Shown here in pieces: positions 9,094 through 61,918 of a DNA stretch of 64,000 nucleotides; position 1 is the stretch's first letter; each line of letters opens with the position of its first letter. Origin of the DNA: Paraphysomonas bandaiensis (Eukaryota; Protista; Chrysophyceae); assembly GCA_965644295.1 (NCBI GenBank), contig CBFFRP010000065.1:124001-188000 (forward strand), given 5' to 3'. The notes under the pieces were generated by a model that did no database searches, had not been told where the DNA came from, and saw nothing but the letters and a program-made list of their open reading frames with translations. Position numbers and translations under genes: made by a program.

Positions 9094-9495
9094 CCTGTAA
9101 GCCATTGTCATTCCACTTGTATTTAATAGTCTATTGCACGTCATATATTGAAGTACTATCAAATTAAAGATGAAATTTTTTCATGGTTTCATACTAATAA
9201 GAATTTGGTTTTATTATTAGCTCATACTTGCTGACATATACGAGGTCTAGGGAATGCTATCTTAGAAAGGAACTCGGAATAGTATCCTTTTTGTGAATAT
9301 CAGGGCCGTAAAACAAACAAAAGGGAATATGCTTAATCAATATTTAGCGGTTGCTGCAATTAATTGGCAGTTATTGCACTTATTTGATAGCAGCACGTAC
9401 TTTTCTACTTCAGACACCATTGGCAGCTGCACACCAGCTAAACGGTCGCTTAGTTCCATAGTTTGGATTCATGCGCAAAAGCATATGTATTTCTT

Positions 9496-9583
9496 CCCTC
9501 AACAAAGTCGGACTCGCACCTTTTCGTGGTGTTCTGGGGGATAAGTACCGGAGAGATTCTCTCTGGGAAACTAACGTGAGCCG
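9496..9583 (+). ncRNA. Putative HDV-like (Pr77-type) ribozyme fold at the retroposon 5' end, probably partly decayed
   Basis: Hand-folded: P1 CCCTCAAC 9496-9503/GTTCTGGG 9531-9538 (6 of 8 pairs); P2 CGG.CTCGC 9509-9517/GTGAG-CCG 9576-9583; P3 ACC 9518-9520/GGT 9528-9530; L3 TTTTCGT; GG 9539-9540; P4 9548-9555/9559-9566 (8 bp); J4/2 CTAAC with candidate catalytic C9571. Confidence 0.6.
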
Positions 9584-9995
9584 CAAACATAGTCAGCAGA
9601 TATTCTTCTGCCCACTCATAGCCGAATGCTTGTGTGGTACAAGGGACAAGGGACACCAATAAGTGTCACTTGTGTAGACGTCTGTGGGCCCTGACGAATA
9701 AACAGGCATCCGGGAATGGGCCCACCTCAAGGGCATCCGGGACAGGGCCCACCTGAAGGGTAACCGGGGTATTGGGCTGCCTGCTGAAGTCAAGCATTCG
9801 GGATGTTCACCTTAAGTACTCAGAGCGAAAGTAGTCGCACCTTGGTACTTGCGGCGACGCAAAAGCAGCTTCCGTAGCGTTAAATAGTAGGATAAAAAAG
9901 TGTGTACTGATTAGTTACAGGTAGAGGTCTAGCATTCATCTAGCTACTAAGTTGGTGCAGGTTTTTAACGCCTATTGCTAATAATAAGATTTGCA
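9496..9995 (+). mobile_element. Short (~500 bp) non-autonomous non-LTR retroposon, copy A
   Basis: Flanked by a perfect 13-bp direct repeat ATATGTATTTCTT (9483-9495 and 9996-10008). Homologous along its length to 37305-37671 (reverse strand) with the same 5' boundary. Its 3' part resembles 10600-10740 and the LINE 3' UTR 12840-12994. Confidence 0.85.
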
Positions 9996-10379
9996 ATATG
10001 TATTTCTTGGTGCCTAGGTGTAATAATTCGTGCAAGTCATTCAGCCTTTCAATCATAGCGGTAAATAAATGCCCATGATTTAAGCGGCGATACAGTATTG
10101 TATTATCTAAGTGAGACATACATCGATGTTTATATCCAGCTGCTATGCCAGGTTGCGCTTGTCGCCGTTATCGTTGATTATAAATCGCCGGAGTTATATT
10201 TTTCGGTACTACGGGTATATTGCTGTTTATTTCCACCTTAAATATTCATAACTCCTTTCTCAAATGCTACACTTTATGAACAAGTGCTACAACATCAGCT
10301 AACTAGCGTGCAATAACTGGGAAGCGATTTATTGAACGATACTTGCACTTTTTGCCTTATAGAAGAAGGTGTTATGACT

Positions 10380-10755
10380 CCTCCAGCTCTTCTTACGTCC
10401 AACTTATACACTGCAGTCAACGGCGCCCCGAAAGTCTACAGATTCTACGTCTCTACCTTACGCCATCCAACTTACCCTGGAAACATTATCCTCCCATCTA
10501 CATAACTCTGACCCTCCCTTAAGCTTCGCGTACCCCTGATTAACCGCACCTTGACACCGAAGGACTATACGTCAGTGGGCATCTCCCAGACACATACTCG
10601 AAGAGAAAAAGTGGTTGCACCTTGGTGCTTGCGGTGACGTTAAATAGTAGGATATCATATTTAATCTCCAGCTAGTTAAAATTGTCATGCTAAATTAATC
10701 CTAACACTTAAACGGCTATTGCAAATAAGAGGACCTTCACTACTACTACTTACTA
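10380..10755 (+). mobile_element. 5'-truncated 3' end of a related non-LTR element
   Basis: C-rich LINE-like sequence followed by GTGGTTGCACCTTGGTGCTTGCGGTGACGT-TAAATAGTAGGATA...CGGCTATTGCAAATAA...GACCTTCAC and a short TAC-repeat tail, matching the 3' end of copy A. Boundaries are approximate and no clear TSD was found. Confidence 0.6.
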
Positions 10756-10960
10756 AAACTTTTAAACTCTTGCACACAGACACTTCAGAGATAAGCCCAT
10801 TTAATATTGGGTTGCAACAAATGTCACCTTTACATAAATAAATCCAGACTTAGTATAATACAGCTAGTTAACTTGAACTCACACTGGATCCTTCGTGGGA
10901 TATTAATATAAGACGCCCCCCAAAACGCTGAATAATAAAGTATAACATAATGTATATTAT

Positions 10961-13020
10961 TTGAGGACAACTACATGCATTTGCCAGAACCTTAGGTTCG
11001 AACATGTCAGAGGACAAAGTTCTCAGATTACAAAAGAGTATCTATGGGCTTAGCCCAAGAGTGCGGCATCAGAATACAACCTCCCTCCCCAGCTACATTG
11101 ACAAAGTCCAATCACAGCTACAACTGTACAATGATCACAAATATGCTTACAAAGCCATCTTCACGGATGGATCCTTCACACGCACACACCTCACCCCTGC
11201 TCACCTACTCGGCAACACCCACACACAGCCCAATTCTCACGACGGAGGAGCTGCAATTGTATGGCTCCCGCCCAAGAACACCTGGGGTCACAGACAAACC
11301 AAAATCCTACAACTTACTGCACCGCAGCACACACAGCGCCTGGCCTCAACGCCTACACCTACGAAACCCTTGCAATGTCAGCAGCACTGACATTCTCCAA
11401 TGTACTCCACTCTTCCGTGCCAATCTGGACTGACTGCCAGGCGGTACAGACGCGGACCAAAGAGGCCCTCTCACACAGACGGCGCACCCTCGGAACAAAG
11501 CCCCAGGGAATATTTTACGAATGCCTCGCCACCACAGCTCTTAAACAGCGTCCAATACAATGGACGCGCTCGCACCCCGAACGTAGAACACAAGATCAAA
11601 GCAACTGGACCTACACTGACCACGGCATTATTTATATAGCTGACGCCGCCGCCAGCGGCGATTGGAAGACACTAGACAAAGTGCTCGGAGCCTCCAACTA
11701 CAGTGTTGTCACAACTGACGCTACGCACATACTGGAAGAATTCTTCACCATGGGTCAATGGCACTGGCGTAGATACGATACACACCTCCTCACAGACCTC
11801 GGTCCTATGCTAGGAGACGTTACAGATCTCCACCACCACCCAGTGGGACCTCCATCACTACACCCTCCGAAGAGATAGCATGTATGCTGCACAAACGCAA
11901 CGAGACACGCAGTATTGGACACGCAGCGGAACAAGGCTCCCACACAAGCTCCATCCCCTCCGTACCCATAACTCCTCCAAACACTACATCCCCCTCGCAG
12001 AGCGTATACGCGAGACGGCATACGTATGGGACAAATCCTTTGCAATGGGTAGAAACCGAGCCAAAGGAAAATCCGGACATGATCGCACAACGGCTTCCAC
12101 ATGCGCAGACTGTGCACACCCCACAGACAACATGGCGCACATGCTTCTCACCTGCACTCACCCTGACATCATTCACATACGTGAAGATGTCCACCAAGCA
12201 CACCACAATAGGCTTTTGACAAACTTCGCACACGCACGCTCCCCCATCCCTGGTTTTACACCGCCATAACCAAACTAGCCAAAGCCGCATGGAACCCAAC
12301 CACCCCCCAGGTTGAGCGCTACTGGGCCGGCCACATTACTGCCACACAAATGGCCGACGCATTCGGACGCCACTTATCCAGCTCACTGCTCGAACATCAA
12401 TTCCACGCCCTAGAAAAATCCATCGCCTCTATCCTACTCCCCCTATATGATGGAGGGCTCCGCATGCTTCGCAATAGGGGACACAGACACCACAACGTGG
12501 ACACGGCACCGGCGACACCGATCCCGACACACGCAAAGCAACGCCAGCCCCAGGATACCCACCCGACACCAAAAGTACTCCAGCTACTCCAGGCGACATC
12601 CACCCCACGAACTACACTCTCTGCAAGAGCCCAGACCCGACAGAGGCAAGCGCAACCACTCCGGAAACAACTCCTCCTTACTTGTGGCCGAAACCCCACC
12701 TCAACAACCAGCATCATCTCCACCACCGACTTGCACTCTCATATACATCTCGCCTCACCCACCCCCCACATAATCCATGGCACAGGCCCGCCAGACACAT
12801 TGCCCAAAGGTAGACCCCCCGACTAACCTCACTACAAGGGACGGTTTCACCATGGTGCTCGCAGCGATGCACAAGCAGTCCCGAGACGGTTGCCCGCCAC
12901 TAGTAGTATATAGCAAATCTAGTTATTAGCTAGTCTATAGACATAAACTAGTTTCTGTACGCAACCGTACTCATGTAATAATCAGACTTTCATATATCTA
13001 TGGGCTTGAGTAATCCGATT
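10961..13020 (+). pseudogene. Decayed Ty1/Copia reverse-transcriptase fragment interrupted by a LINE (Copia parts 10961-11051 and 13008-~13020)
   Basis: YMHLPEP...EDKVLRLQKSIYGL before the insertion and GAG TAA TCC (decayed K-Q-S) after it reconstitute the RVT_2 motif YM..P.G...KV.RL.KSIYGLKQS. Confidence 0.65.
11052..12994 (+). mobile_element. 5'-truncated, frameshifted non-LTR retrotransposon (LINE) with RNase H and C-terminal CCHC zinc knuckle
   Basis: RNase H motifs across frameshifts: IFTDGSF, GGAAIV, AYTYETLAM, IWTDCQAV, WTRSHPER, IYIADAAA. Zinc knuckle CADCAHPTDNMAHMLLTC. ORF stop at 12826. 13-bp TSD TATCTATGGGCTT at 11039-11051 and 12995-13007. Strong C/A skew. Confidence 0.88.
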
Positions 13021-14205
13021 CATTATGTATGAATGATATGAAAAATTGAATTGTGCAGTGAATAGACTCATATCGGTCGCATCACCTAGATTACTACAAC
13101 AGGAATTTTTGACGAAGCCCAAAAGATCAGTACCAGTATCAGCACCAGTACATTCAAGACTTGCTAACTAAATTCAATTCTACACAGTATAACATGTTTA
13201 TTTCAATTAAGATTCACAAACAATATTCACACGAAAACTCCTTGGATTACTCGCGTTGTGCCGTCGCCATCCCATATTTTGTATACCATTTGCACGATTT
13301 TGTATATTGCCCTATCGTCGGCATGTCAGAATGCAATTCTTCTGCCATTCCTACTCCCGTAACTCGGATTTAAGTTTCCATCCCCGTCATGAGATTGTGT
13401 GATTATGAAGATGCTATACTTTAATTTTCTCTAATCTGTGCACCATTACGTGCCACTTTTCTTGAAAAGAAATCACATCACATCCAAATATGCTACACAG
13501 ACTTCTTGGTTGACATTTTCACATTTTTACTATATATTGAGGAATTCATTGATATCAACGTATATCTTCCAGCAAAAACAGAACATCTGTTTAACCAGTG
13601 GCAAGAAGGACTTATGACTTTGAAATCTGCGGAGTGTTTGCGTTTTTTAAAGGGAGTGTACAAGAGCAGTGTAACCAGTGAGTTTTCATATATTAAGTAA
13701 GAACTGGAAAAAAAATAAATGCGTGAGTGACAAGGCTTATAGATAAAGTATGTCATATGAGAGTTTCAAAATCACTTTGTACATTATTTTCTTGAAGCGT
13801 ATCAATTAGCGCAAACAGTCGCCTCATAGGGAATAGTACAAATGGACAGACACTACTCTCGAGGTATCGTAGCGGTGTGATACGAAGGCATAAAAACCAG
13901 TTAACACAACTAGCTGGCACGCTTGCACCATACTTAATATCACAAATTAGACTTAATATCACAAATTAGACACGATAAAATTGGTATAATAAGTTTGAGT
14001 TCATAAGGAATACCAAATTTACGGATGACGTGGAAATAATTATTGCCATTTTTTTTAGAAATAATGACTTCTTATGTTAGGAATAAGGAATCCCAATTTT
14101 TTATGTATATTATGTGTACACTTACAAGCCAGCACAAGGCAGAAACAAAAATTCAGAAAGTATTACGTTGAATATCCAGCAACGCTCTTTACCAGAACTC
14201 CCAAT

Positions 14206-19490: not shown

Positions 19491-20938
19491 ATGTCACTGG
19501 TAAGTAAAAGTGTTGTGTTTTGTATGCATCCATTGATGTCATATTGCAGACTTTATACACTGACGGAGGCAACTTCCGTGCCTTCAAAATTTTGATCGCT
19601 GCGGAGTACAATGGCGTTGCCATTGATATCCCTAATTTCAAACTCAATGTCGATAACAAGACTGAAGAGTTCAAGAAGAAGAGCCCTATGGGAAAGGTTC
19701 CTGTGCTTGATACTCCTTCAGGTAGGTTTAAGTTATATTTTATGCTATAGTATAAATGTGCTTTTCATATATTTATATGTAACATATATATATCTGTAGG
19801 CTCTATTTTCGAGAGCAATGCTATCGCCCGCTACGTTGCTCGTATGCGCCGCGACACTGAGCTTTGCGGTGCTTCTTTCTTTGAAGCCGGTCAGGTTGAC
19901 TCGTGGATCGATTTCTGCAGCCACGACCTCGAGCTGCCTGCCACTCTCTGGATTTACCCTGTGCTCGGATATATGCCTTACAATGCCAACACAACTGCCC
20001 GTGCCAAGACTGACTTTGCTCGTGCCCTTACCGTACTAGAGAACCACTTAGCTGATAAGACATACCTTGTGGGCCACAAGATTACTCTGGCTGACATTAC
20101 TGTTGCCTCCACTCTTGTTTACCCATTCAAATTTGTTGCCGATGCCGCCTTTAGAGCCCCATTCCCCAATGTTATGCGTTGGTTCGATACTTGCGTGAAC
20201 CAGCCCAACTTTGAGAGTGTTATTGGTAAGGTCGTCCTCTGCACCACTGAGTTGACGGCTTCTGGAGCAACTCCTGTTGCTTTCACCCCTGCTTCTGACA
20301 ACAAGAAGGAGGGTAAGAAGGACAACAAAAAGAAGGCAAAAGAACAGAAGCCAAAGGAACAGAAACCCAAGGCCGAGAAAAAGCCAAAGGAAGAGAAGCC
20401 TAAGGAGGCCCCTGCAGCTGAGGAGCCTAAGCCTGCCAAGAAGCCTGAGCACCCCTTCAAGATCATGGATAGAGAGGCTCCTTCCCCTTTTGTTATGGAC
20501 ACCTGGAAAAAGAATTACTCCAACTGCGATACCTATGAGGCTGCAATCGACGAATTCTGGAAGACTTTTGATGCTGAGGGCTGGTCTCTGTTCCGTGGTG
20601 ACTACCAGTACGACAATGATAACTCTGTTCTCTTCATGACCAGCAATCTTATTGGTGGATTCATTCAGAGAACCGAGGAGATTAGAAAGTGGCTCTTCGG
20701 TACAATGACCATCCGTGGAGAGGCTAAGAAGGGTGGAATGAAGATCACCGCCTACTTCCTTATCAGAGGCCAGTCTATCCAGCCACTTATTGACTGCAAT
20801 GACGATGCTGAGTACTACACCTGGACCAAGGTGCCCACACCTGTCAGTGCGGAGGATAAGGCCAAGATTTTCGAGTACTGGACATCAGAGACCACCTTAG
20901 AAGGCGAGCCTCTGTTGGACTCGAGAGTGTACAAGTAG
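19491..20938 (+). CDS. EEF1G: Translation elongation factor eEF1B-gamma
   Basis: GST-N (NFRAFKILIAAEYNG...SPMGKVPVL...IFESNAIARY), GST-C, Lys/Glu-rich linker and EF1G C-terminal domain (FVMDTWKKNYSN...FMTSNLIGGFIQR). Strong codon bias; two introns. Confidence 0.96.
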
Positions 20939-30464: not shown

Positions 30465-33008
30465 CTATGTCGCGAGGGGATTATGTGTAGCAACCAGCTC
30501 TATATTTCTATCTTCTCTGGTCCCACCCGCGTCGCCCGTACTGTTGAAACTTCTGTTCGAAATTGAAAGTAAGCCGCTATCATCGTGGTCGTACTGTATC
30601 TCGTAGCCCCATTGACTAATGAGTTTATCATGCGCATGTCTGTAGCTTTTGAACACCGCCAACATTGATATGATTATTCCAATGGGTAAAAAAACTACAA
30701 TCATAATGTCATCCAAGTCTAGTCTCCACTTGTAAAAAGGAAGAAGATACTCATCACTCCCCGTATCGGCTACCTCGTCGTCATCGGTTCCTGTACTCTC
30801 CCAAGATATATTATGGTATAATGGCCATTCGAAGTCCGGACGTGATGTCGTCACAAGGATGTCAGCGTAGTACTGCGCCGAATATCGCCCCTCAACTTGT
30901 CGGATCCTCCACTCTGACCAGTTTTCTATTATACCTCTGGAGTCATGATGTCGTTGCAACTGAGCAAAGAGCGCTCGATTCACTAAAGTTTTGAGCTCAC
31001 CACTTGAGGCCATAAACATAAACGCAGAGTCGAGCAGAGGTTTTAGTTCAAGTCCTCTCTGAAAGTCCTGCACCAGCAGATCAACAGATACCACATACTC
31101 TCCACCATTTAACTCTTCGGTCACCTCATAGTCCACATCGTCATCACCTAGGTTACGCTCCGTCGAGTCATCCACCCTAACATCCCAAACGTCAACTCCT
31201 TTAACATCCTGTAAGACCCGCCGTACGGTCCATTTCAAAAACTCGACCCCTCCGCTTTCCCAAATATCCTTACGATCCCACTTTTGTCCTGTCAACGCTA
31301 TAACATAAAACACTGTTAACACTCGACTCTCTTCCACCGCCTGGAACCACTCCCCCGATAAAAATCGGGCAACCATATCCTGCGATCGTCCTGGTTGGTA
31401 TGCTGGAGCTTGGTGGCCTGCTCCATGCACAGTTACCAGAGTAAATCCTCCGCTGAATCTAGACACATAACCAGCCGTCTGGTTGACACGGTACCAGGGA
31501 CGCCAGAGGTTCTCAGACTATATCACACCCCACGGAACGAGCTTAGACAAAAACGAAAAATTATACATGAAAACCCACCTGAAGTGACAGATCAAACACC
31601 CAGTGCTGTGTTCCAATTGTAGGGCAGACTAGGTCGTTGTCTCCCGAATATACCAATACATTCACTTCCTCCTCACGCTGAATTATCTCCCCGTACAGGC
31701 CCGCGACGTTTTCGTAGTAATCGCTATCAGGCCAGGCGTTGAGTATCTCATCGCTACATTGAGACCACGTAGAAGAAGGGCGACCCGGCACTAGCACATG
31801 CAGGGCTGCCTGGACGTCAGCTGCGTTCAGGTATTCTACAAAATGCAACTCAGACTGTGAACACAATGATGCAATACCAAACAATTACCAGTCATGTAGC
31901 TGGCCAGACATGGATCGTATTCTGCCTCCGAAGCTCGGCGACGACCACGGAGATTTCTAGCACCATTATTTTTAATCCGCCCCATGGTCCTCTCAAGCCT
32001 CAGCAGGGGAGCAGACGGTGTGTACGGTTCGGAGGGCCTAAGAGGGGACAGCCAGGTCTCCTGCTCCGGCAACGAGTCGGCCAAGCTATCAATGTTCGCA
32101 ACACACACGGGGAAGTTCTCACCATCTACACAAAACAAATTAGAATGTAAAATGACTGCAAGGCACTTACAATAGTCCAGTGCATCGCCCACAACGTCAA
32201 ACATGCTCTCTACTAACTCTATACAGTGGACGGGATACTCTGCAATCTCGACATCCATAGATAAACAGGAACTTGATGAGAACTCTTCCCAGAGAGGAGC
32301 TGGAATCAATTGATAGCCCCAAAATGCATGTGCGCGGGCAACAAACCCACTTCCGAATGATACCCAGGGGTTACCAACCAAAATGCCCCTCAGGCGGCTC
32401 CTCACGGAAAGTTGAGAATCCAAGAGACGCAGCGCAAGTTGTGGAATGTAGTGACCACCATACGACTCAGATGCCAAGAAGAGGTCATTAGACTGTCTCT
32501 CTGGAAAGATATTAAAAAATGCTTCTATTGTAAGTAGATTATCTTCTGCAGCTGTATCGTCTCCATAGTCACTGTACGGGACAGAAGAGTAGGAAAATCC
32601 AACGCCAACAGGTTGCTCCACAAATACAACATTAGCAAACCTATTCCAAGCATACGGGTTATCAACAAGATATACCCCATCATCGCCTCCGTCGATTGGA
32701 CGCCAAGGTCCTATTTCAGTGAAGAACCCAATCATACCAGAGCATCCTGGGCCCCCATTAGTAAAGAATATAACAGGGTCTGTCTGGGGGTCTCCCTGCG
32801 ACTCTGTATATATATAATGTATATGCTTAGATTCAGATATGACTAAGTGACCACTGTATACACGGGACCGAGAGTCTGATGCCCTTGGTAACGATGGGAC
32901 GTAATGGTCGTCCTTATCTGCATTCACACTAACGCTCCTGCAGATACTCGACAGACACAGAGCAGTGCACACCACTGCTTGAAACAGAGTGTGATATACT
33001 TGAGGCAT
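30465..33008 (-). CDS. Serine carboxypeptidase (S10) with C-terminal extension and transmembrane anchor
   Basis: Signal peptide, NGGPGCSG, EQPVGVGFSY, catalytic SESYGGHY, YSGDNDLVCP and GAGHQAP. TM segment IMIVVFLPIGIIISMLAVF followed by a short cytosolic tail. Confidence 0.92.
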
Positions 33009-37304: not shown

Positions 37305-37671
37305 GTGAATGTCTGATTACTAGCAATAGGCGTGTAGCTAAACAATTTAATTAACTAGTGCTTAACTCTGATATCCTACTATTTAGCGCTAGAGGTGTAA
37401 CCACTATCGCTCTCAGCCCGGATGCTTGACTTCAGGAGGCAGCCCAATACTCCGGATGTCCTTAAGGTGGATCCATTCCCGGATGCTTGTTATTCGTCAA
37501 GGTCCAAAGACGTCTTGTACCACACAGACATTTGGCTATAAGTAGACAAAACGTTATCTGCTGACTATATATGCGGCTCACGCTAGTTTCAAGGAGAAAT
37601 ATCGCCCGTACTTATGTATTTATCCCCCAGAATACCACAAAAAAGCGCGAGTCCGACTTTGTTGATGGTCA
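37305..37671 (-). mobile_element. Short non-autonomous retroposon, copy B (older, internally deleted)
   Basis: Reverse complement reads CCATCAACAAAGTCGGACTCGC...TTCTGGGGGATAA...GAAACTAGCGTGAGCCGC...TAAATAGTAGGATA...CGCCTATTGCTAGTAATCAGACATTCAC, colinear with copy A. Degenerate 13-bp TSD at 37292-37304 versus 37672-37684 (11/13). Confidence 0.8.
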
Positions 37672-40324: not shown

Positions 40325-43300
40325 ATGGCCAAAGCACATCTTGAAAAATTGATTGCCACACATCTAGGCGATTATGTTCGTGAATATGATTCTAGCTCAC
40401 TTTCGGTAATTGATTTTAAGTGTGTGATTATTTGCTTTGTCATATTTGCTCTCAGATCGGAATATGGGAAGGCGATGTGAGACTTAGAAACTTGGTCGGT
40501 GCAGTAGATCGTTTGTTTTCAATTATGTATTGACGTCATGTTTTTAGGTGCTGAAACCCCAAGTTGTAGATATTGACGAGGATAGTTCCTTTAAGATAGA
40601 ACATGGCTTTATTGGAGAGTTGCGCTTACAGGTCCCGTGGACCCGCTTGCAGTCCGGCCATGTGAAGGCCAGTGTAGATGATGTTCACATAGTACTCAAG
40701 CCATCTGTAGAGTATAGCCCAGAGAATTTGAAAGCTAGAGAGAATAAACTGCATGAAGCAAAGATGGTATGCTTTGACTTGGAATCTGTATCTCTTTTTA
40801 CCATATGGGCAGGCTAAGCTAGACAAAGAGGAGCAACAGTTATTCGGAATGGCACCTACGTCACCGGATACGTGGACCGATAGGATAATGAATTCCCTGG
40901 CATCTTCGGTACTGTCGAATATTGTGAATGGGTTTTCTCTTTCTTTATCTCGGTGAGGCGCCTGTATTAGCAGTTGTATGGTAATAACTTATACTTGCAG
41001 TGTGAAAGTATCCTTCCTGCTTCCTCTCCCGGCACACGACGAACTGTGCCATGTCCGTCTCTCTGTTATGTCTGCGGTGGTAGAACCGTGTAACTCTGGG
41101 ATCTCGCAGCAGAAGGGTGAGATTCACCTTTTGGGAAAGCGTTTATCGGCGAGTGGTATCAGCGTGGATGTAAATCGTGTGTTCGACAGTGAGGCTTCGG
41201 ACCACTTTTCTCGAGATCCCTCTGCACCTCCTGTTGCTACTCACTCTCGAAGTTTGCATTCTTCCTTGGCTACTGCTGCTTTATCTAATGTTTTGGTGCT
41301 CCCGGCTCAGCTGACAGCCACGTTATTTGTTTGTGAGAGAGGAAATGAGGGCGGAGTAGTGTCTTCTCACCTGACGGCAGAGGTAGGATTCGGTCCGGTG
41401 GAGATAACTCCTCATGTACCCCACATGTATCTACTACGGGACGCACTGGATCAGTATACACGAGATAATTTTCGGCGGCGGTATTTGCACTTACGTCCAA
41501 TACAAAATCCCTCAAGCGAGTTGAAGAACGTAAAGGCCTGGTGGCTGTATACCATAAGCGCAGTGCTCATATGTCGGCGTGGACGATGCTCTCTTAGTAT
41601 GCAGGAATTGAAATCCGGAAAAAACGAGATATCGACGGCGTCACGAACCCAGAGCCGTATACGCAGCCGATATATTCACCTCTACCGTCAACACATTGAA
41701 AACAAATTGCGGGCCTTTGCTTCCCCTCTAAAGCCTTCTGCGAAGCAATGTCGATCTGGAGACGAACACAAGGAACAGACTAATAACAATATGGATGAGA
41801 GGTGGAAACTACCGCCCCAAGAAGCTGCGGAGATGGACGCACTTCATCGATCTACAACTTACGAGAAGCTTCTTATATATCGCGCAATGGTTCATCAGGG
41901 ACTTCAACGCGCTGGTTTTACTGCGGAGAAACTACGAGCAAGTGTTCAACACAGCCGCACACGTTCCTCAACCCTTGGGATGTTTGCATCGCACTTTTCT
42001 TCAGAAAGTACCGGTGCGATGGGAGCAACGGTAGATGGTACGTTTGTTCTGCCAGAAAGTCGTAATCTCACACATTGTAATATAGATGATATTGATGCTG
42101 AAATTCTCAACCTCTTTGAGACTGTTAATAGGCAAGCGCAAGAGGCTAGGCAGCATAATGAACTAATTCTGAATATAAAACTCTTTGCCCCTCGTGTTGC
42201 AATCTGTCCGCGAGAAAGCGTTGCATCTCATATGGAACACAGTGCCGGGAAAGTGGCCAGTGCAGTATCTCCTAAGTCTGCTGCTTTTGTTTTATATGGA
42301 TTGCAGGGCTCATTTGCCCAAGGCGAGCTATCATGTGATGGTACTGCGGTGCTCAGTCTGGGGGGGCTGCGGATGCATGGAATGGAAGGGGTAGAGTTGA
42401 TGTCGTGCGGAGAGAATACTGATGTATGGACACATCCACTGACTAGTAGTGAGGATAATAGAAAGCCGGCACTATTATTGACTTACAAATGGAGAATGGC
42501 TGATGCTGTTGGGGATGAAGATGCATGCAGTAGCCCCTCGGACTCCGATGAAGAGGTTAACACAATGCGGAATGCTATAGAGAAAATGAGTTACGGCCAC
42601 AATCAACACAAGTCTATTGATTTTTCTATGAAAACACTAAAAATTGTATGGGATGAATCGTCCATGGTTTATCTTATGCACCTCGCCCAAGAGTACTCGG
42701 AGAGGGGGCAAACCCATCTAGCCCCCGCATTAGCGTTAGTGACCAGCGTACATCCTTACACTGACATTCGGAGACGTTGTGCTCTTTATTCGAAGAACAA
42801 ATCGTATTTTACTGCAGTAGAATCAAATGCATCTAGTGTCACCTCTTGGAGTGCCAAAATGTGCGTTGAATCGGTGGTAGCTGCGTTTCCTTATGAAAGG
42901 TCGTCTGGTGATAGTGATGCGACAGATGTAGACTCAACGTCACGACAGGGTGTGTTGAGTATATCATCTGGTTCGTTTAAATTGTATGCTGGTGATTTTC
43001 TCGTTGAAATGGGTATGTTGGTGATTCCAGAATTTAATGACTCTCACCAGGCGGGTTGTGATTCATTGGGAGATATACCTACGCGATCTTTGTGGCCACA
43101 TGCAGACGAAATACTGAAAACTAAGCTATCTAAACTGTGCACACCGGTTATCCGCCCAATAGTTGTGCACTTGGAGAATGTAAATATTTCAATTGTATCT
43201 AATCATATAGGTGGCAGTTCATCTCCAATTCAACTTTTGAAAGCCCCATTTTGCTGCAAAGGAATAGTGTCACCGTGTTTGGTTCAGTGTCATGCAATAT

Positions 43301-46300
43301 ATCCCGATGTGCAGATTGACGTGTTTTGCTCACCTATTCTACTTAATATAACTCCAAAGGTACGCCGCCTTGAGCACCTAAATATACTACGCTAATTCTC
43401 TGATTCTGATGATAGGATGCGCTGGATATAATTGATGTCACAGCGAGCGTTACACATCTCTTTATGTCGCATTCATTGTCGCCGGCATCCTCATGTGATT
43501 CTAGTGGGAATTACATCAGTCAAAACACCAGATTTTCCCCTAGAATACGAACACTCGCACCTCTGTGCGTTCTGAAAGCTAGAATCGATATCGATGAAGT
43601 TAGTGTGACGTTGTTGTCTCCTGATAATATTAGAATTGAAGCTGCGGTTACAGAAATATTGACGTCTTATAGCTGCCATGTTCGGGATAGAAGCGGATTT
43701 TCTAGAACTGTGCATACCGCCGAGAGGCTTTCGATCCAGCAGCTTGGGAAATACGACATCGGATTCAGGGCTGCTGAGAGCGCCCTTCGTGGGGTATGCA
43801 ATGCGGTAGAGTCACATGAAAGTGATATTGATGGGGCCATTCGGAAACAAGTGCTGAGCCTCACAAAGACGTTGCCTTCTACTGTGGCACGCATCCCGAT
43901 TGTGTCTGTCACTTTACATGGAATTCATATATCTGATTACTCGCTGACCTATGACTGCAGAAAGGCACTCTATGTTGAAGAATTGCTTATCGCCGATCAT
44001 GAATGTTGTCCAGTAATCCATATTTTTTGTGATAATCAAGGACGTTACGATAATATGTCCGCACACAGTAAAGTTAAGGCATCTAACAGAGAACGGAAGA
44101 GAAGCAACGCGTCTTCTAGAAAAAGTTCGCGCCCTTTCATTGAAACGATTGCTAAGAAATTAGAATCGACCAGCATCTCATCATACTGTGCAATTGGTAT
44201 TGTATATACGGAACAAGATACCAGTTGTGGGTGGGGAGCAGGTGGTCACTCAACTAGAGTACTTTACGAGCTGTGGCCAGAAAGGCATACTCCTTTGAAA
44301 AGCGGAGAGTTTGTTGTTTCTTTAAAAAATGTAGATACGTTACTCTCTCTCAGCGGAATACCACAAATAATTAAAAGCGCTATTCCTATCGCAGCTCAAT
44401 TATTGGAACGAATTTCATCGTACCAACCTGGTGATCGTCATGGAGCACTGCCTTCAAGTCATGCGATGGGAAGCTTTGGATCAGATAAAAATTATGACTA
44501 TCGGCGTGGATTTCGTAAGACGTCGTCATATGACTCTGAATCTATGTTAGAAACTACCAATATATCGTCCCCAAAACCGGTCAACTCTGTGAAGTGCTCT
44601 TATCAAATATTAGTCGACTGTCTGCACGTGGTTTGTGCTGATGGCCCCCGTTATCTCGCTGAACTTGCAGTTACAACGATGAAAGCTAACTATTCATCAT
44701 CGCCGCAAGACAAGAGTGTGCGCGGTGGCAAAAAGGTGGCGCGTAAGATTTCACCCTCTCTACGCGTTGCTATCAGTACGTTGGACCTATATGATTTATC
44801 CCTGGCTGGCAGCAAGCACCCTACAGTGATATCAAAGAGTGTGACTACTGATGAACATATGATAGTTGTATCAGTAAACTTCGAGAAGAAAGGGTGCAAC
44901 ATGAAATGCTTTTTTAATGGAATGCGACTATGTATACTTTATCGGTTTGTGTCGGAGCTGTTGTCTTTTTGGATTACTCATTTTAGCAAGCACGTAATTG
45001 ACGAACTTAATAAATTTGAGGACACCATGCAAAAAATGAAGAGAAGTGATGATGTGCTGCCTCACGCTGATAACGATACGTTGGACTCGTTTGACTCTTC
45101 ATCGGAAGGTTCGGTCGAAAGAATTAATGATGGTGATGAAGTCTTGACGGGATTTTTTGAATATCCTAATGTTGGATTAGATGCGAGTGAGCTTGCACTT
45201 TTAAACTCTCAGACCAAGCACCGTGCATCTCTTTTTGGTTTGGACTACATAATGGCTGACCCACGTGATGTAACTATCACACGCACCCGTTCTGTTGATG
45301 TCAACGATGTTGATGGGCCGAGTGAGCCGACGAGGTCCTTGAAATACAAAATATCTTGGAGTATGGAATTCACTGATGTGACCTTGATTTTTCCACGAAA
45401 TTCGGCATGTGATGATTTGGCCGCAGCGAATATTGGGAGGTTGTCCATATGTGAGTACCAGCTCTCTCACAGCTGGGATGCTCCTCCGCCAGATGTGGAG
45501 ATGTCTGATAGTGATGAGGCAATATATTATGACTTTGACGAAAACCAGTGGATGAAAACTGGTCACTATTCCAAGTGCTCGGATAAACCCTCGACAAGAC
45601 CGCAGTTGTCACCATTCATTTTAAATCATAAAACGTCATTTGACGGCCATCATGTTTCTGGTAGAAAGCAGTTGTTCAAGTATAGCACAGAACACAAGGG
45701 GAGTGATATCTCATCGATTGCTTCGTTTGAGAGTAGTGGAAGTGTTGTTGATGAAGAGGAGTTTTTGAGTGCCGATGAAGGAGACGATGTTGACACCAAT
45801 GACCCTGCCAAGAAGAGTATATTTCTGAGCAGGCAGGAAAGTATAGATATCGATGAAGACGACTTCAAAGATACATTCGAGGAGCCTCAGCGTCCTGTGA
45901 TGGCAAGTGTGTTGTCATCTCAGTTCAGTAGTCGACCTACACCTCGGAACTACACTGAATGCTCGGATGGGGATGCTTTTTCTGAAGAGTCCTGTGACGA
46001 AAACAGTGATAATGTCGGCGCCGAATCAGTGTACCGGCTGGTCTTCAAATTTGAAAACGTCCAATTTTTCTGCTCCCTTGCATCTCGTCTCGATGTAGAT
46101 AGGCCTCCCGTAGACCATATGCAGACTATGTTCAGACGGTTTACGCATATCAGGCAAAACTATCCAGTGTATTCGATTGTCCATGCTCGTAAAGGGGGCG
46201 CAACGTGGTCAAAGCAGTCCTGGAACACGATATCGCTCTCTCCAACTAATATTTCGGTTGCTGTTGATCTCACTGAAACGGCAATGAGGTTTTTAATATC

Positions 46301-49300
46301 AGAAACTGAGCGGGCAACTCCTATGCGCTTGAGCGTCTCTATGGCAGAGCTTTACATGCTCCTCAGTATTTATTTTGACAACCTAAATGAAAAGGAAGAT
46401 TTCTTTTCCCCTGATACTCATCGTGGAAGTGGATCAGTGGAGAGTGTTGACACAGATGAGTTTGTCAGCGCCGATCGTCCTTTTTTTCCGCAGCATCCAG
46501 AATACGGGTCATCAGCATTTTGCGAATATGTACGAAATATAAAAAGCACTGTGGATTTTTTAGTTGTTCGCTCGGACTTAAATTTGAGGTGTTCTATGGA
46601 TGAGAGTAAGTATTTTGGATCAGAAATTCCATCGTTCAAGTACCTCAATATTGTAGAAGAAAATGATGCTCGCGATAAATATACAGGAGCCAAATATGAG
46701 TTTGCGAATATTCGTCTGCAGTGGTTTACACTTTTGTGCTGTATGTCTGATGATGTAATGCAAGTTGCTCTAGGAGTTGGTGACGCCAGTATTGTTGACA
46801 AGCGTAACCCGGATAGGAGTTTTTCGACAGAGGTACTTCGTACTTCTCCAAAGATTGTTGGGAGTGACTTATCGAACTCAATAAATGTCAGACACGGATA
46901 CGCAGATCTTGATTTCGGTCTCAGGGAAGGCCCGTCGAGTATTTATTGTCCGATCGACATACCTTTAAAAATAACATACTTCTCCACTGGTAATACGTGG
47001 GGTGTGACAAATATTGGAGCGAATGCGCCAGATGTTGATGTGAAGAATCTTGATATTGTGTGGCTATTAGTAGATTATTTTTCCAGTTACTTTTGCTCTG
47101 CCGTTTTTGGAAGTCCCTCTTGTGCTGCGTATTTCATGATGGATTCTAATGCTTGGCCTTATGGTGGCCTGGATACCAGAGTTTTTGTCGCAAGGCCTCA
47201 CATTCAAACCGTTGATAATACGGTGGATAAATATTGTCAAACTTTGGTTATAGAGGCAGACAAAGGTGTGTACTTTCGTTACATTTATGACACGATGCAC
47301 TCTGTGAAAATGGAAGTTCACGTATCTGGGCTGGCAGCCATGCTGTTGAAATCATACCGTCCACCCTCACAGGCTCGCGGATTGAGGGGTACGGCTGGTT
47401 CTGGGAGAGGGGTTCGTACGCTTATTGAAAACTTATCGGTGAAATTCAGCACTCACTTTGATAAGAAGGCAAATGTTGTGGACTATCTGGCCCATATGTA
47501 CCCGGAAACGTCTGCTGTGAACAGGAGCTCACCCTCTTATCAAAACGAGCATATCTCACCCACTACAAGTAATGACGATAAGAGCGATGCTGCTCATAAG
47601 CAATCGAACCCCTCCTATACTAATTTTGACGCCGATTGCCTTTTTCTTTCTGGTGTTCGTATACCATACCCAAAGTGTGTCTCTCGGCTCCATGTTCCCA
47701 CAGGGGATTTTCCAAAGCAATGTTGCCGAATAATTTCTAGTATTGAAGACATTATGTTTGCTGTAGCACTCGGAATAGAATTTCTTGGATTGGAAGAGTC
47801 CGTTGAGTATACAAGCTCCAATTCGAAGCTGAAGGTATTGATGTGACTATTTCATGACAATGCTAATTGTGTGTTAGAAATCGGACTCAGCTACAGAAAG
47901 AAAGACGGGCGTGGTAGAGCCTGTGATATTCGCGATATTTAGGATACAAAATGTAAAGTGCATGGTTGTGGACAATGTACTCGGTCTTCACCTCCCACTT
48001 GCTCAGGTAAATGTAAATGTTACATATATCTCAATATACTCGATTAATTTTCTGTAGCTCTTTCTGGCAGATATATCCGCTATAATAAACATTGCACCGT
48101 GTGATGATAGCCTCACTCCTATTCCAGTAAAATCTAGCAATAACACATCTGCAGCAGACTTGTCGAAGGAGTTATCACAGTGGACAGCTAATCTTCCCTT
48201 GCATCAAAGAAAAAGCTTCCGCTTAAGCAAACTACCTTCAGAGGATTCGATACTTCCTGAGCCTCCGTTGCACAGAGTAATGTCTATAGATGAATCACGT
48301 ACTCATATGACAAAGTCAGAAAAGCTCAAATCGGATATAAAGGCTTATGGGGAGGCTTTTATGTGGGGAGATTATTTCAACAGTATGCTTAAGTGCTGGG
48401 AGCCTCTTGTTGAGCCATTTACATTAACTTGCTTACACGACCAGGTAATTTGTTTATATTGTCTCAGAGTATGATACACTTCTTAACACTAACAACATGC
48501 AGAGTTCAGACAGAGGTTTGGGAGCGATTGTTAAATCAACAAGTCCAATTCATGTCAACATATCTGTTGCAATGATACGAACATTGAACGATGCGATGAG
48601 AGTTGTTGAAGAGCTCGGGATAGACAGGCGTGTTGAGGTGGGATTTATTTTTGCTCCTGTCTGCATTAAATTTGTTTTGTAGTATCAACAACATGATGAT
48701 GGGCACAGTCGTGAAGACGAACGCCTATCCGCGCAACCTGATCTCCCTCCGTCACGACGAAGAGCCTCCAGTGATGGAACAGTTTCAAACCTCAGAGATG
48801 GGGCATTTGCTCAACACCCTTCGCCGCAGCGAGAGGATCGCGTATATATGGTGGGAAGTTGTGATGATGAAGATGCGAACTATGGGTCTGTGTTCAGTCC
48901 TCCAAGCCTCAGGCGTTCCCTTTTCTCTCGACCATCATTGGCAAAACCGCATCTTTTGGGATTTCAGAATCACCGGCGCACTCGTGACTCCGTGAGTGCA
49001 GTCGCATCACATTTCACCAATGGCATTGAACACGTGGAAACTGTCCCTTTGAATAAATCAGCTAGAGTTGGGTTTTCTATATTAAATTTAACTGGTTACC
49101 CTATACGATATGTACAAGAGTGGGAAGACGGAAACCGGCAAACTATTCAGTATTTACAGGATGAACAGCGTGGACTTCTAAATTTTATTGCCTCAAACAC
49201 AATTATCCGAGATAATCGTATCGTGGAGCAGTCGTTCACTATGGATGCAGGGAAGTCCACGACGTTGAAGCATACCACTGGCCACCAAGTAGCACTTCAA

Positions 49301-58425: not shown

Positions 58426-59429
58426 TTGCGGTAGAGTTATCACGCCCTTTGTATATACATATGTAATTGTAGCAAAAACGATGGATAGATATATTTGCTG
58501 TTTGTCACTGTGTTTTTTTAAACTTTACGTAATCGTGGAAATTCAACGTTGCCACAATGATACTTGTATTCATATATCATCTATAACGTGGACTTTTCCC
58601 TGCATCATTCGAATAGTGTGTTAGACCGTACTCTTTATGAATTTCAGGCATCCGCCTTCCTCTGTTCAGTGGTTTTCAGACCTTTACAATCATGTTCTTG
58701 ACGTATATACCATAGAACTTATAGTCAACATGACGTTTGTTACAACTGCATGGTTGCCGTAAACGAAATACTCTACATAAAAAGTCACATATTTCACGCA
58801 TCCACCTAAGAAAGGATAGATGGATAGGGGAAAGATTCCATTGGTCCTTTGCCCTTGGCGAGTTTGCCCTTGTGCAATACATAGAGCTTTTTGTAATTTC
58901 TTTTCCATCATACTTTTACATTGTTGAACTATAAAACTTTGCATCTATATATCATGATAAGTGATACGTTCAGTATGATATATGTTTGAGGGCAGTTAAA
59001 AGCTGTATTTCTAAGGTATTTGAATTATGACCGTTACTTGAAGGATACAGTAGCGATTAACAGCATTACCTGAACAATACAATACCCCAGATGCATGATT
59101 ATTCGTCACAAGGCCAAAAGATGTCTACACAAATTACACTAATTACTGTCCCTTGTACTTTTCCCCGAGAACGTTATGAGTGGACGAACGTTATATGCTG
59201 TCTATGTTTGCGGTTCACATTAGTTTAATGAAGAAATCTCTCCGGTAGTTATCCCCCTGTGCAGCGGGGCTGCAAAACTATAGTATGTCTGCTTTGGAAG
59301 TGTCAGAGAGTGAGAAATGGTAACGCCTTGGCGTTAACTGTTCTTCCTGGGCATGTGATTGCTAGCTATGATTGGGAGCAAGCTGTACTTGAATGGAGTA
59401 CGTGCTAGAAGTGAGACCTCTTGCTGGTG

Positions 59430-60761: not shown

Positions 60762-61918
60762 ATGGATCCTACTAATATCCAGGACATTTTGCCTGCATTC
60801 ATGCAGCAGATAAGGCAAGAAACACAAGAGAACAATGAAAGGCTGACCAGAGAAACACAAGATAACAATGATAGGCTGACCAGAGAAATAAAAGAGATTA
60901 ATCAGAAAATGGACGTCAGATTTCAAGAAATACTCAACGCGATCGGGCAACAATTGAATAGCATTACAGAGCATACGGACAAGAAAATGGAACAGTTTCA
61001 CAATGATATTACGGAGAGACTGGATACACTGGAAGCTAGAACAGCCATCCTGGAAGGAGAGAAAGAATTAACGGAGCAGCAGGACAGGGCAATTACCCAC
61101 CCGAGTGCGTCCAGGGAACGAAAGACCATTTTTATGAGGGAAGTGGAAGAGACCACGCACCTAGCGGAGAGAAGACTAGTAGTGGTGCAAGTGCCCACGC
61201 CATCTCATTCACACATATTCCGCCAGGTCCATTAAATCTAGGAATATGTGTGAATGAGATGGCGTGGGCATTTGCACCACTACTTGTCTTCTCTCTGCTA
61301 GGTGCGTGGTCTCTTCTGATTTTTGGTGTGCATGGAGCAATGACTCTCATACTTCGGAATCCCCTACATTGCAGCGCGTGCATCACCTACTGAGTTTGAG
61401 TAGCTAGAGATTTTCAACAGATTTTAGGAGAGGAGATCAAACCCACCCCTAACCATTTGCAGCTCACACCAACGGAGTGTTTAGTTCAGGTTCACAATGC
61501 CCAGGTCGGACACTGGGGAGAGCGCGAGACCTGGAGAAGACTGAACAGGGACTTCATTGGGCACGGCATATCCCAGCGAAAAATTAAGGACTATATAGAC
61601 AGATGCGCAAATTGCCAGAAGTCCAGGAGGGAGATGAAAACTCGGCTGATTCCTGTGCAGAGACACTTGAAACCTCCATCACACAGGACTGCAATTGGTA
61701 TAGATGCATTAGCTATTACACCCCAGGGAACGAGTGCGTCCAGGGAACGAAAGACCATTTTTATGAGGGAAGTGGAAGAGACCACGCACCTAGCGGAGAG
61801 AAGACAAGTAGTGGTGCAAATGCCCACGCCATCTCATTCACACCCCAGAACACCACGAAAGGGTGCGAGCCCGACTATGTTATACCTCAACCATAAGAAT
61901 TCTAAAATTTATTTTTAA
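60762..61918 (+). mobile_element. Rearranged Ty3/Gypsy-like LTR retrotransposon relic (gag-like coiled coil + integrase fragment)
   Basis: Integrase zinc-binding HHCC (VHNAQVGHWG...IDRCANCQK) followed by the first core Asp (IGIDAL). Upstream coiled-coil ORF has a 33-bp tandem duplication. RT and RNase H are missing; internal direct and inverted duplications are present. Confidence 0.8.
61146..61316. repeat. 76-bp inverted repeat (fold-back) with 19-nt loop
   Basis: 61241-61316 is the reverse complement of 61146-61221 with 3 mismatches. Confidence 0.92.

Follow-up and report, generated by a model that had tools for sequence, protein, structure and literature searches.

The chrysophyte Paraphysomonas bandaiensis carries, on a 64,000-nucleotide (nt) stretch of its genome (NCBI GenBank assembly GCA_965644295.1, contig CBFFRP010000065.1, positions 124,001 to 188,000 of the forward strand; below, the window means this whole stretch, with positions counted from its first letter), a non-coding element of about 500 bp and, further downstream, part of a long interspersed nuclear element (LINE). 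The short element, here addressed as a short interspersed nuclear element (SINE), and the LINE are both flanked by direct repeats of the target site and end in a related sequence. This raises the question how the SINE is mobilised, and whether it was built from the LINE itself. A first-pass annotation, made from the letters of the window alone, had proposed that the LINE clade mobilises the short element in trans, and that the two constitute a ribozyme-headed, bipartite system analogous to ingi/RIME or L1Tc/NARTc of trypanosomatids. According to the analysis presented here, the two elements very probably form a stringent-type LINE/SINE pair, in which the SINE uses the tail of the LINE while its head does not stem from the LINE.

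A young SINE family with fixed ends

All strings and coordinates of the first-pass annotation were re-found in the 64-kb window sequence. The SINE copy in question (copy A, 9496..9995, + strand) is flanked on both sides by the duplication ATATGTATTTCTT, which is located at 9483..9495 on the 5' side and repeated exactly at 9996..10008 on the 3' side, where the first 4 nt (ATAT) can equally be assigned to the terminus of the element. Three parts can be distinguished on the same strand. The head (nt 1-88 of the element, 9496..9583) has a sharp and fixed 5' end, belongs to no known RNA family and offers a candidate fold resembling that of the hepatitis delta virus (HDV) ribozyme. It is followed by a body (9584..9820), to which no origin was assigned, which contains a 27-bp tandem repeat of 2.4 units at 9705-9768 and shows no similarity to the LINE. 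The tail (9821..9995) is a homologue of the LINE 3' untranslated region (3' UTR) and contains the box CACCTTGGTACTTGCGGCGACGCAAAAGCAG and the terminus TAATAATAAGATTTGCA, for which the majority form of the family reads ...GACTTTCAATAT.

With copy A as DNA query against the 62.6-Mb assembly from which the window is taken, at least 40 scored matches were obtained from 3388 first-look candidates, nearly all of which span query positions 1-500 with 91-94% identity to copy A. Thirty SINE loci were fetched for the analysis of ends, majority sequence and T-runs. Without exception, these 30 copies start with CCCTCAACAAAGTCGG and end with ...TAATAATAAGACTTTCA+ATAT(A), after which the upstream flank recurs as a direct repeat. 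Compared to their own majority sequence, they show a mean identity of 98.4% (range 96.9-99.4%), which identifies the SINE family as young. The element is about 510 bp long and lacks a conserved open reading frame (ORF). Thus, the non-coding element annotated at 9496-9995 is real, representing a repeat family with at least 40 full-length copies and fixed ends, next to which 5'-truncated fragments also occur. A less biased sample of about 100 kb was taken from the window and from DNA lying downstream of LINE loci. SINE-family fragments make up an estimated 2-4% of it, so that the family matters for the annotation of this genome; extrapolated genome-wide, this corresponds to 10^3-10^4 SINE fragments, a value to be taken as a rough order of magnitude only. 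At SINE nt 59-64 (window 9554-9559) the 30 young copies fall into two groups of roughly equal size, one reading CCGGAGAGATTCTCTCTGG and the other CCGGAGATATT-TCTCTGG. By this linked change a G-C pair is gained or lost at a hairpin tip, and two SINE sub-lineages have thus been active recently.

An element of about 500 bp between direct repeats might also represent a solo long terminal repeat (LTR) or a non-autonomous DNA transposon. However, the duplications vary between 10 and 18 bp instead of having a fixed length of 4-6 or 2-9 bp, and neither terminal inverted repeats nor TG...CA ends are present. In addition, the tail is homologous to a LINE 3' UTR (see below), truncation from the 5' end is observed, and the copies at the 30 loci are solitary and never flank an internal region. 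The first-pass annotation had named either identity as an outcome that would speak against its model; we consider this explanation to have practically no chance of being correct.

The probable partner LINE

The LINE copy of the window, including a junction filler, extends over 11052..12994 (+ strand) and lies between two copies of the duplication TATCTATGGGCTT (11039..11051 on the 5' side, repeated at 12995..13007 on the 3' side). The 13 extra nt at the 5' junction (AGCCCAAGAGTGC, 11052..11064) are absent from all other LINE copies, and longer copies continue upstream from query nt 14. Therefore, the LINE-derived part starts only at 11065 and not, as annotated before, at 11052. The first six nt of the junction (AGCCCA) are the reverse complement of a part of the adjoining duplication (TGGGCT). 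The coding part of the LINE (11065..12826, + strand), which is 5'-truncated and frame-shifted, comprises the RNase H region (~11128-11705) and the CCHC motif (~12103-12156), both correctly recognised in the first-pass annotation, and terminates with a stop codon at 12824-12826. It is followed by a 3' UTR of 168 nt (12827..12994, + strand), which holds the tail in common with the SINE and ends with TAATAATCAGACTTTCATA. A genome search with 11052-12994 yielded 47 matches from 470 candidates. The 3' end is common to all of them, while the 5' ends are scattered over many positions; hence, they show the usual pattern of 5' truncation, and the window copy has to be regarded as a truncated pseudogene.

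The full-length LINE was reached via a word search with the reverse transcriptase (RT) region, leading to proteins encoded on public metagenome contigs. Two of these contigs, L069 (8829 bp, ENA) and L070 (7310 bp), show 99.2-99.6% identity to LINE copies of the genome. L070 (NCBI GCA_002726235.1, PBSN01000010.1) is filed as part of a 'Nitrospiraceae' metagenome-assembled genome and evidently represents eukaryotic contamination of a bacterial bin. The similarity between both contigs begins at a single point (L069:409 = L070:499), upstream of which their DNA is unrelated. The sequence they have in common opens with TTCCCTGGGGTCCGAGCTATG, and the 5' end of the LINE reads TTCCCTGGGGTCCGAGC.... Four LINE copies of the genome begin at exactly the same nucleotide (C426:350558, C44:3707, C32:119216 and C8:1417), and the copy on C426 reaches position 359223, which corresponds to a LINE length of 8666 bp (8.67 kb).

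Judged from its sequence, the LINE appears to consist of a single giant reading frame; in copy L034 the frame is open over at least 1078 amino acids (aa) up to the same stop codon as in the window copy. About 900 aa without a Pfam match are followed, in this order, by a SET domain, an apurinic/apyrimidinic (AP) endonuclease (APE; PF03372), the RT (PF00078, E 6e-20), RNase H and the CCHC motif. While the RNase H was detected neither by Pfam nor by BLASTP, its D-E-D-H-D residues do not vary among ten homologues, of which the most distant has 25% identity. The 195-aa RNase H region was modelled with AlphaFold (pLDDT 84, pTM 0.85), and the top Foldseek matches are all RNase H domains (probability 1.00, E down to 6e-5). 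The CCHC motif (C-x2-C-x8-H-x4-C) is likewise invariant. APE, RT, RNase H and a C-terminal CCHC motif are hence found within one ORF, the combination by which APE-type RNase H LINEs (I/Tad1/Ingi/R1/LOA group) are recognised. The nearest named proteins are the APE+RT+RNase H elements of Rhizophagus with 27-30% identity, and among solved structures the RT matches R2 (E 1e-12) ahead of L1 ORF2p (E 3e-7).

With respect to the 5' region of the LINE, a 70%-identical copy of LINE nt 23-190 is located 0.9-1.5 kb upstream of the 5' end in three of the four full-length copies (C44:5237-5404, C32:117837-118004 and C8:2307-2474), as judged by coordinates only. At more than ten other loci, the similarity (68-73% identity) is confined to LINE nt 14-198. 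These loci could represent a separate short element with the 5' module of the LINE, or the 5' ends of related LINE families.

A tail shared by SINE and LINE

SINE and LINE end in the common terminus TAATAAT(A/C)AGACTTTCA(A)TAT. Moreover, the last 175 nt of the SINE can be aligned with the last 150 nt of the LINE, i.e. with nearly the whole of its 168-nt 3' UTR. The score of this alignment is 62, compared to 23 ± 4.1 for dinucleotide shuffles, none of which (0/1000) reaches 62. The alignment is anchored by the terminus and by a box of 32 nt, which reads CACCTTGGTGCTTGCGGCGACGCACAAGCAG in the SINE and CACCATGGTGCTCGCAGCGATGCACAAGCAG in the LINE. The box is also present in L075, a member of a LINE family with 74% nucleotide identity, in a fragment of the window at 10600-10745 and, in part, in a second SINE relative of the window (copy B; both described below). 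A LINE with 39% RT identity ends in the related terminus TAATAATATGAGTTTCTATATA. An RNAalifold analysis of the tails of six elements provided no meaningful consensus structure.

Poly(A) is absent from both families, as all SINE and LINE copies end with ...GACTTTCA(A)TAT(A) and the duplication follows directly. Since the duplications often open with TA or TAT, the last 2-4 nt of the element are inseparable from the target. The length of the duplications was tabulated for both families. Hereby, 10-18 bp with a median of 13 bp were obtained for the SINE (27 copies), and 10-15 bp, again with a median of 13 bp, for the LINE (eight truncated copies). The lack of poly(A) and the related terminus, both noted before for the window alone, are thus borne out by the fetched SINE and LINE copies, and the duplication lengths of the two families prove to be alike.

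Based on the common terminus, the 3' UTR-like tail, the equal duplication length and the absence of poly(A), mobilisation of the SINE in trans by this LINE clade is the best reading, and in this respect the first-pass annotation can be followed. Mechanistically, the RT of the LINE would recognise its own 168-nt 3' UTR via the internal box and the terminus TAATAAT(C/A)AGACTTTCA(A)TAT. The LINE would nick TA-rich DNA and prime on the target, with no involvement of poly(A), and a second nick 10-15 bp away would give rise to the duplications of about 13 bp. The SINE, carrying a diverged copy of the whole LINE 3' UTR as its tail, would then be copied in trans. Its RNA would presumably be made by RNA polymerase II (Pol II) or by read-through, and its invariant 5' end would be defined by an internal promoter or, alternatively, by a self-cleaving activity of nt 1-88.

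Origin of the SINE head

In a bipartite element of the ingi/RIME or L1Tc/NARTc type, the head would correspond to the LINE's own 5' end and the tail to its 3' end. The tail common to SINE and LINE is in line with this possibility, as are the duplications of about 13 bp in combination with a LINE-encoded RNase H, both known from ingi, and a head for which an HDV-like fold can be drawn. The 5' end of the full-length LINE, however, is unrelated to the SINE head. SINE nt 1-100 and the first 150 nt of the LINE align with a score of 16 (shuffles 16.8 ± 2.9), and SINE nt 1-320 and the first 400 nt of the LINE with a score of 26 (shuffles 22.8 ± 3.2). Neither BLAST nor nhmmer found SINE-like sequence anywhere in the LINE contigs L069-L075. 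The LINE 5' end, in turn, shows no HDV-like fold, even if the rules are relaxed, and has no Rfam match. Apart from this, poly(A) is absent here but present in L1Tc and ingi, as far as these are described in PMC4035085. The more than ten loci resembling LINE nt 14-198, which are defined by coordinates only, would faintly suggest that related families share a 5' end of the LINE type instead of the SINE head. An unrelated LINE 5' end had been named beforehand as the outcome that speaks against the trypanosomatid analogy, and this part of the first-pass annotation has to be abandoned; we consider a bipartite origin to be highly improbable. Hence, the SINE is to be seen as a composite with independent head and body, and not as an internally deleted LINE.

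What, then, is the head? ARAGORN found no tRNA in the window, in accordance with the earlier remark that no tRNA A/B boxes are evident in the short element. At a threshold of E<=10, Rfam gave no relevant match for 9300-13300 and none for the 125-nt head region (9486-9610); in the scan of the latter, the covariance models of the HDV, CPEB3 or drz families were likewise without a match. The head is not a tRNA, 5S, 7SL or small nuclear RNA (snRNA). A run of four T (T4) at SINE nt 26-29 is kept in 30/30 copies and a run of five T (T5) at nt 473-477 in 29/30. Runs of four or more T act as terminators for RNA polymerase III (Pol III), and a SINE transcribed by this polymerase would contain none internally. 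The conserved T4 and T5 runs therefore argue against Pol III transcription of the SINE. When compared with the strict criteria of SINEBase, the family agrees in size, non-coding nature, dispersal, duplications and LINE-shared tail, and it departs from them in lacking a small-RNA head and in containing an internal T4 run. Because of its head, the SINE thus lies outside the strict, Pol III-based definition.

The 5' ends of SINEs are usually set by an internal promoter. Accordingly, the head might be such a promoter, or the derivative of an uncatalogued host small-RNA gene, with the 5' end of the element corresponding to the transcription start. New classes of SINE heads are known (PMC4494074), the 77-nt Pr77 of L1Tc is both promoter and ribozyme (PMC3383444), and the evidence for a ribozyme detailed below is not decisive. 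On the other hand, the head matches no Rfam small-RNA family and has no tRNA-like fold, and the internal T4 and T5 runs would be awkward for transcription by Pol III. Taken together, we place this explanation just short of an even chance.

Alternatively, nt 1-88 could constitute an HDV-like self-cleaving ribozyme, acquired independently of the LINE, that frees the SINE RNA from Pol II read-through transcripts at nt 1. In the candidate pairing, P1 is formed by nt 1-6 and 40-45, P2 by nt 14-16 and 18-22 with nt 81-88 (A17 bulged), P3 by nt 23-25 and 33-35 with a 7-nt loop, and P4 by nt 53-60 and 64-71; J4/2 reads GAAACUAAC, with C76 as candidate catalytic base. Four helices thus follow each other in HDV order, with P1 starting from nt 1 and a C in J4/2, directly at a 5' end that is invariant in all 30 copies. 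The corresponding descriptor, which was written after the sequence had been seen, fits 5 of 3000 dinucleotide shuffles. Independently, the RNAfold centroid shows P1, P3 and P4. Across diverged heads, the best-conserved stretches are P1'/J1-4 (GGGGGATAAGTAC) and J4/2-P2' (GAAACTAACGTGAGCC), and P4 persists as a hairpin in several stem variants, among them the linked G60/+C64 change of the young copies. The lack of a Pol III-type head together with the conserved internal T-runs would also suit this explanation, and a precedent exists in L1TcRz, which is initiated by C and has a weak P1.1 (PMC3185411).

These features are opposed by several others. The J3/1 linker of 4 nt is non-canonical and no solution with <=1 nt exists, P1.1 is weak (one A-U and one G.U pair), and no covariance model of the HDV families matches. 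The nested fold of the head is no more stable than those of shuffles (z = -0.32). On 14 diverged heads no covariation was found: 79.9% of the cells are paired, compared to 80.7% in shuffles, with only two double changes, both in P4. As the copies are decaying pseudogenes, this comparison has little power. Moreover, the partner LINE lacks such a ribozyme. An RNA contig crosses the 5' boundary of the SINE, which is uninformative because the data are contigs. Pattern scans of metagenomes for further SINE heads gave no match in the first and three unrelated bacterial matches in the second scan. All in all, a ribozyme head is conceivable but rather doubtful. If true, non-autonomous elements can recruit HDV-like ribozymes without inheriting them from a LINE, which would widen the routes of SINE origin. 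The more comprehensive scenario, in which a SINE transcribed by Pol II or read-through owes its 5' end to a LINE-independent HDV-like ribozyme and is mobilised by a ribozyme-less LINE of an undescribed marine-protist clade with a SET (histone-methyltransferase-like) domain fused to its endonuclease, is in our view unlikely.

With regard to transcription, contigs of poly(A)-selected marine metatranscriptomes cover SINE and LINE, but not the unique DNA between and flanking them, and are thus compatible with the transcription of both elements. It is no proof of transcription, as carry-over DNA of a high-copy repeat would assemble alike and RNA ends are not visible in contigs. Some points weigh against trans-mobilisation by the LINE described here. 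Mobilisation in trans is deduced from shared sequence. The 8.67-kb LINE was assembled from the overlapping natural copies L069, L064 and L034 and the C426 coordinates, with no single copy read intact throughout. Outside the box and the terminus, the tails of SINE and LINE are only ~65-70% alike, and the SINE may actually be driven by a different LINE family from within this clade; LINE families at 69-80% identity do exist in the genome. Finally, the termination rule applied to the T-runs is general knowledge and not derived from this organism. Nevertheless, the homology of the tails (0/1000 shuffles) and the equal duplication medians leave the LINE clade as the best candidate for mobilising the SINE.

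A SET domain fused to the LINE endonuclease

The SET domain of the LINE (PF00856, E 1.7e-9) is located in frame directly upstream of the AP endonuclease (L069:3269-3583, within the element at L069:409-8829). In the genome, the SET region is found at C426:353134-353934 and is colinear in three copies. The SET domain and the start of the endonuclease are also kept in a LINE family whose RT shows only 44% identity; over 379 aa, the two regions are 31% identical (E 3e-45). Owing to this colinearity and to its conservation in a distant LINE family, the SET domain is regarded as part of the element and not as a chance fusion. Among solved structures, it is best matched in sequence by the SET domains of KMT2C and KMT2D (E 0.02). 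The motifs AGYINDP and EELLVNYGY are present, the former with ND in place of the usual NH. A description of a SET-bearing LINE was not found in the searchable literature, which does not prove novelty. The SET-domain LINE is possibly a more surprising result than the SINE pair, as it suggests a retrotransposon with a chromatin-modifying domain. The capture of DNA methyltransferases by other retrotransposons offers a comparison (de Mendoza et al. 2018, as cited in PMC6338049).

Further features of the window

Apart from copy A, the window holds several relatives of the SINE. Copy B (37305..37668, - strand), in which both the head and the tail module of the SINE are found, is shorter and older and has diverged in the head to 70% identity. 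Its duplication is degenerate (~10-13 bp with mismatches), so that the clean 13-bp duplications previously ascribed to all three elements stand for copy A and the LINE copy but not for copy B. A SINE-related fragment at 10600..10745 (+ strand) likewise contains the tail box, ends in a related form of the terminus (...AAATAAGAGGACCTTCAC) and consists of DNA that is repeated in sequencing runs. It lies within 10316-10745, which represents another repeated element between the SINE and LINE copies and is covered by many contigs in DNA runs. In an old SINE-family fragment at 59086..59266 (- strand), the first ~30 nt of the head are exchanged for other sequence. This variant head (at 59,2xx) could form an alternative P1 of 7 bp and a P3 of 5 bp; it was dropped as support for a ribozyme, since a matching P2 is lacking and the DNA examined contains no second copy. 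A further head fragment of 43 bp is located at 61839..61881 (- strand).

Among the neighbouring genes, that for EF-1 gamma (19844-20938) is identical to an MMETSP transcript, and its closest named relative is an Ochromonadaceae protein with 59% identity. A serine carboxypeptidase gene is located at 31836-33008. Very long open frames (805, 1460, 457, 702 and 1293 aa) extend over 40978-57434 and, based on a weak VPS13_C match and on protein-atlas neighbours, look like one giant VPS13/BLTP-like lipid-transfer gene.

Comparison with known systems

Tail-sharing LINE/SINE pairs of the stringent type are known from animals, namely UnaL2/UnaSINE1 of the eel and tRNA SINEs with CR1 or RTE tails (PMC3747384, PMC5786205). 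As in these pairs, the tail of the present SINE corresponds to the LINE 3' UTR with an internal box and a terminal motif, poly(A) is dispensable, the duplications of both partners match and the layout is head-body-tail. In contrast to them, the head is not derived from tRNA, 7SL, 5S or snRNA and contains T-runs, the partner LINE carries a SET domain, and the pair resides in a marine protist that is probably an ochrophyte. Nothing pertinent on stramenopile SINEs or on a LINE/SINE pair in this lineage was found in the searchable literature, which is no proof of novelty.

With ingi/RIME and L1Tc/NARTc (PMC3185411, PMC4035085, PMC3383444), the system has in common a LINE with APE, RT, RNase H and a zinc knuckle, duplications of ~12-13 bp, an abundant short non-coding partner and a candidate HDV-like fold at the exact 5' end. 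As far as these three accounts describe them, the short trypanosomatid elements are internal deletions of the LINE, with which they share the first 77 nt (Pr77) and poly(A). Here, in contrast, SINE head and LINE 5' end show no relation, an HDV-like fold is missing from the LINE, and poly(A) from both elements.

In R2 SIDEs and in the ribozyme-bearing SINE-like elements of Schistosoma, likewise non-autonomous, a self-cleaving ribozyme generates, or may generate, the 5' end, and a LINE protein recognises the 3' end (PMC3414825, PMC8501958). The ribozyme of the site-specific R2 SIDEs is inherited from R2, while the Schistosoma cases involve hammerhead or twister variants; the fold considered here differs from both in being a candidate HDV-like one with a non-canonical linker. 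The strict SINE definition of SINEBase demands Pol III transcription and a head from a small RNA gene (PMC3531059). SINE heads are, however, not limited to the three classic RNA genes, as the heads of SINEU match U1/U2 snRNA (PMC4494074). Unlike those of SINEU, the present head matches no Rfam family and thereby stands outside every catalogued SINE head class. In conclusion, SINE and LINE of the window represent a clean, young and apparently still active case of tail-sharing LINE/SINE parasitism.

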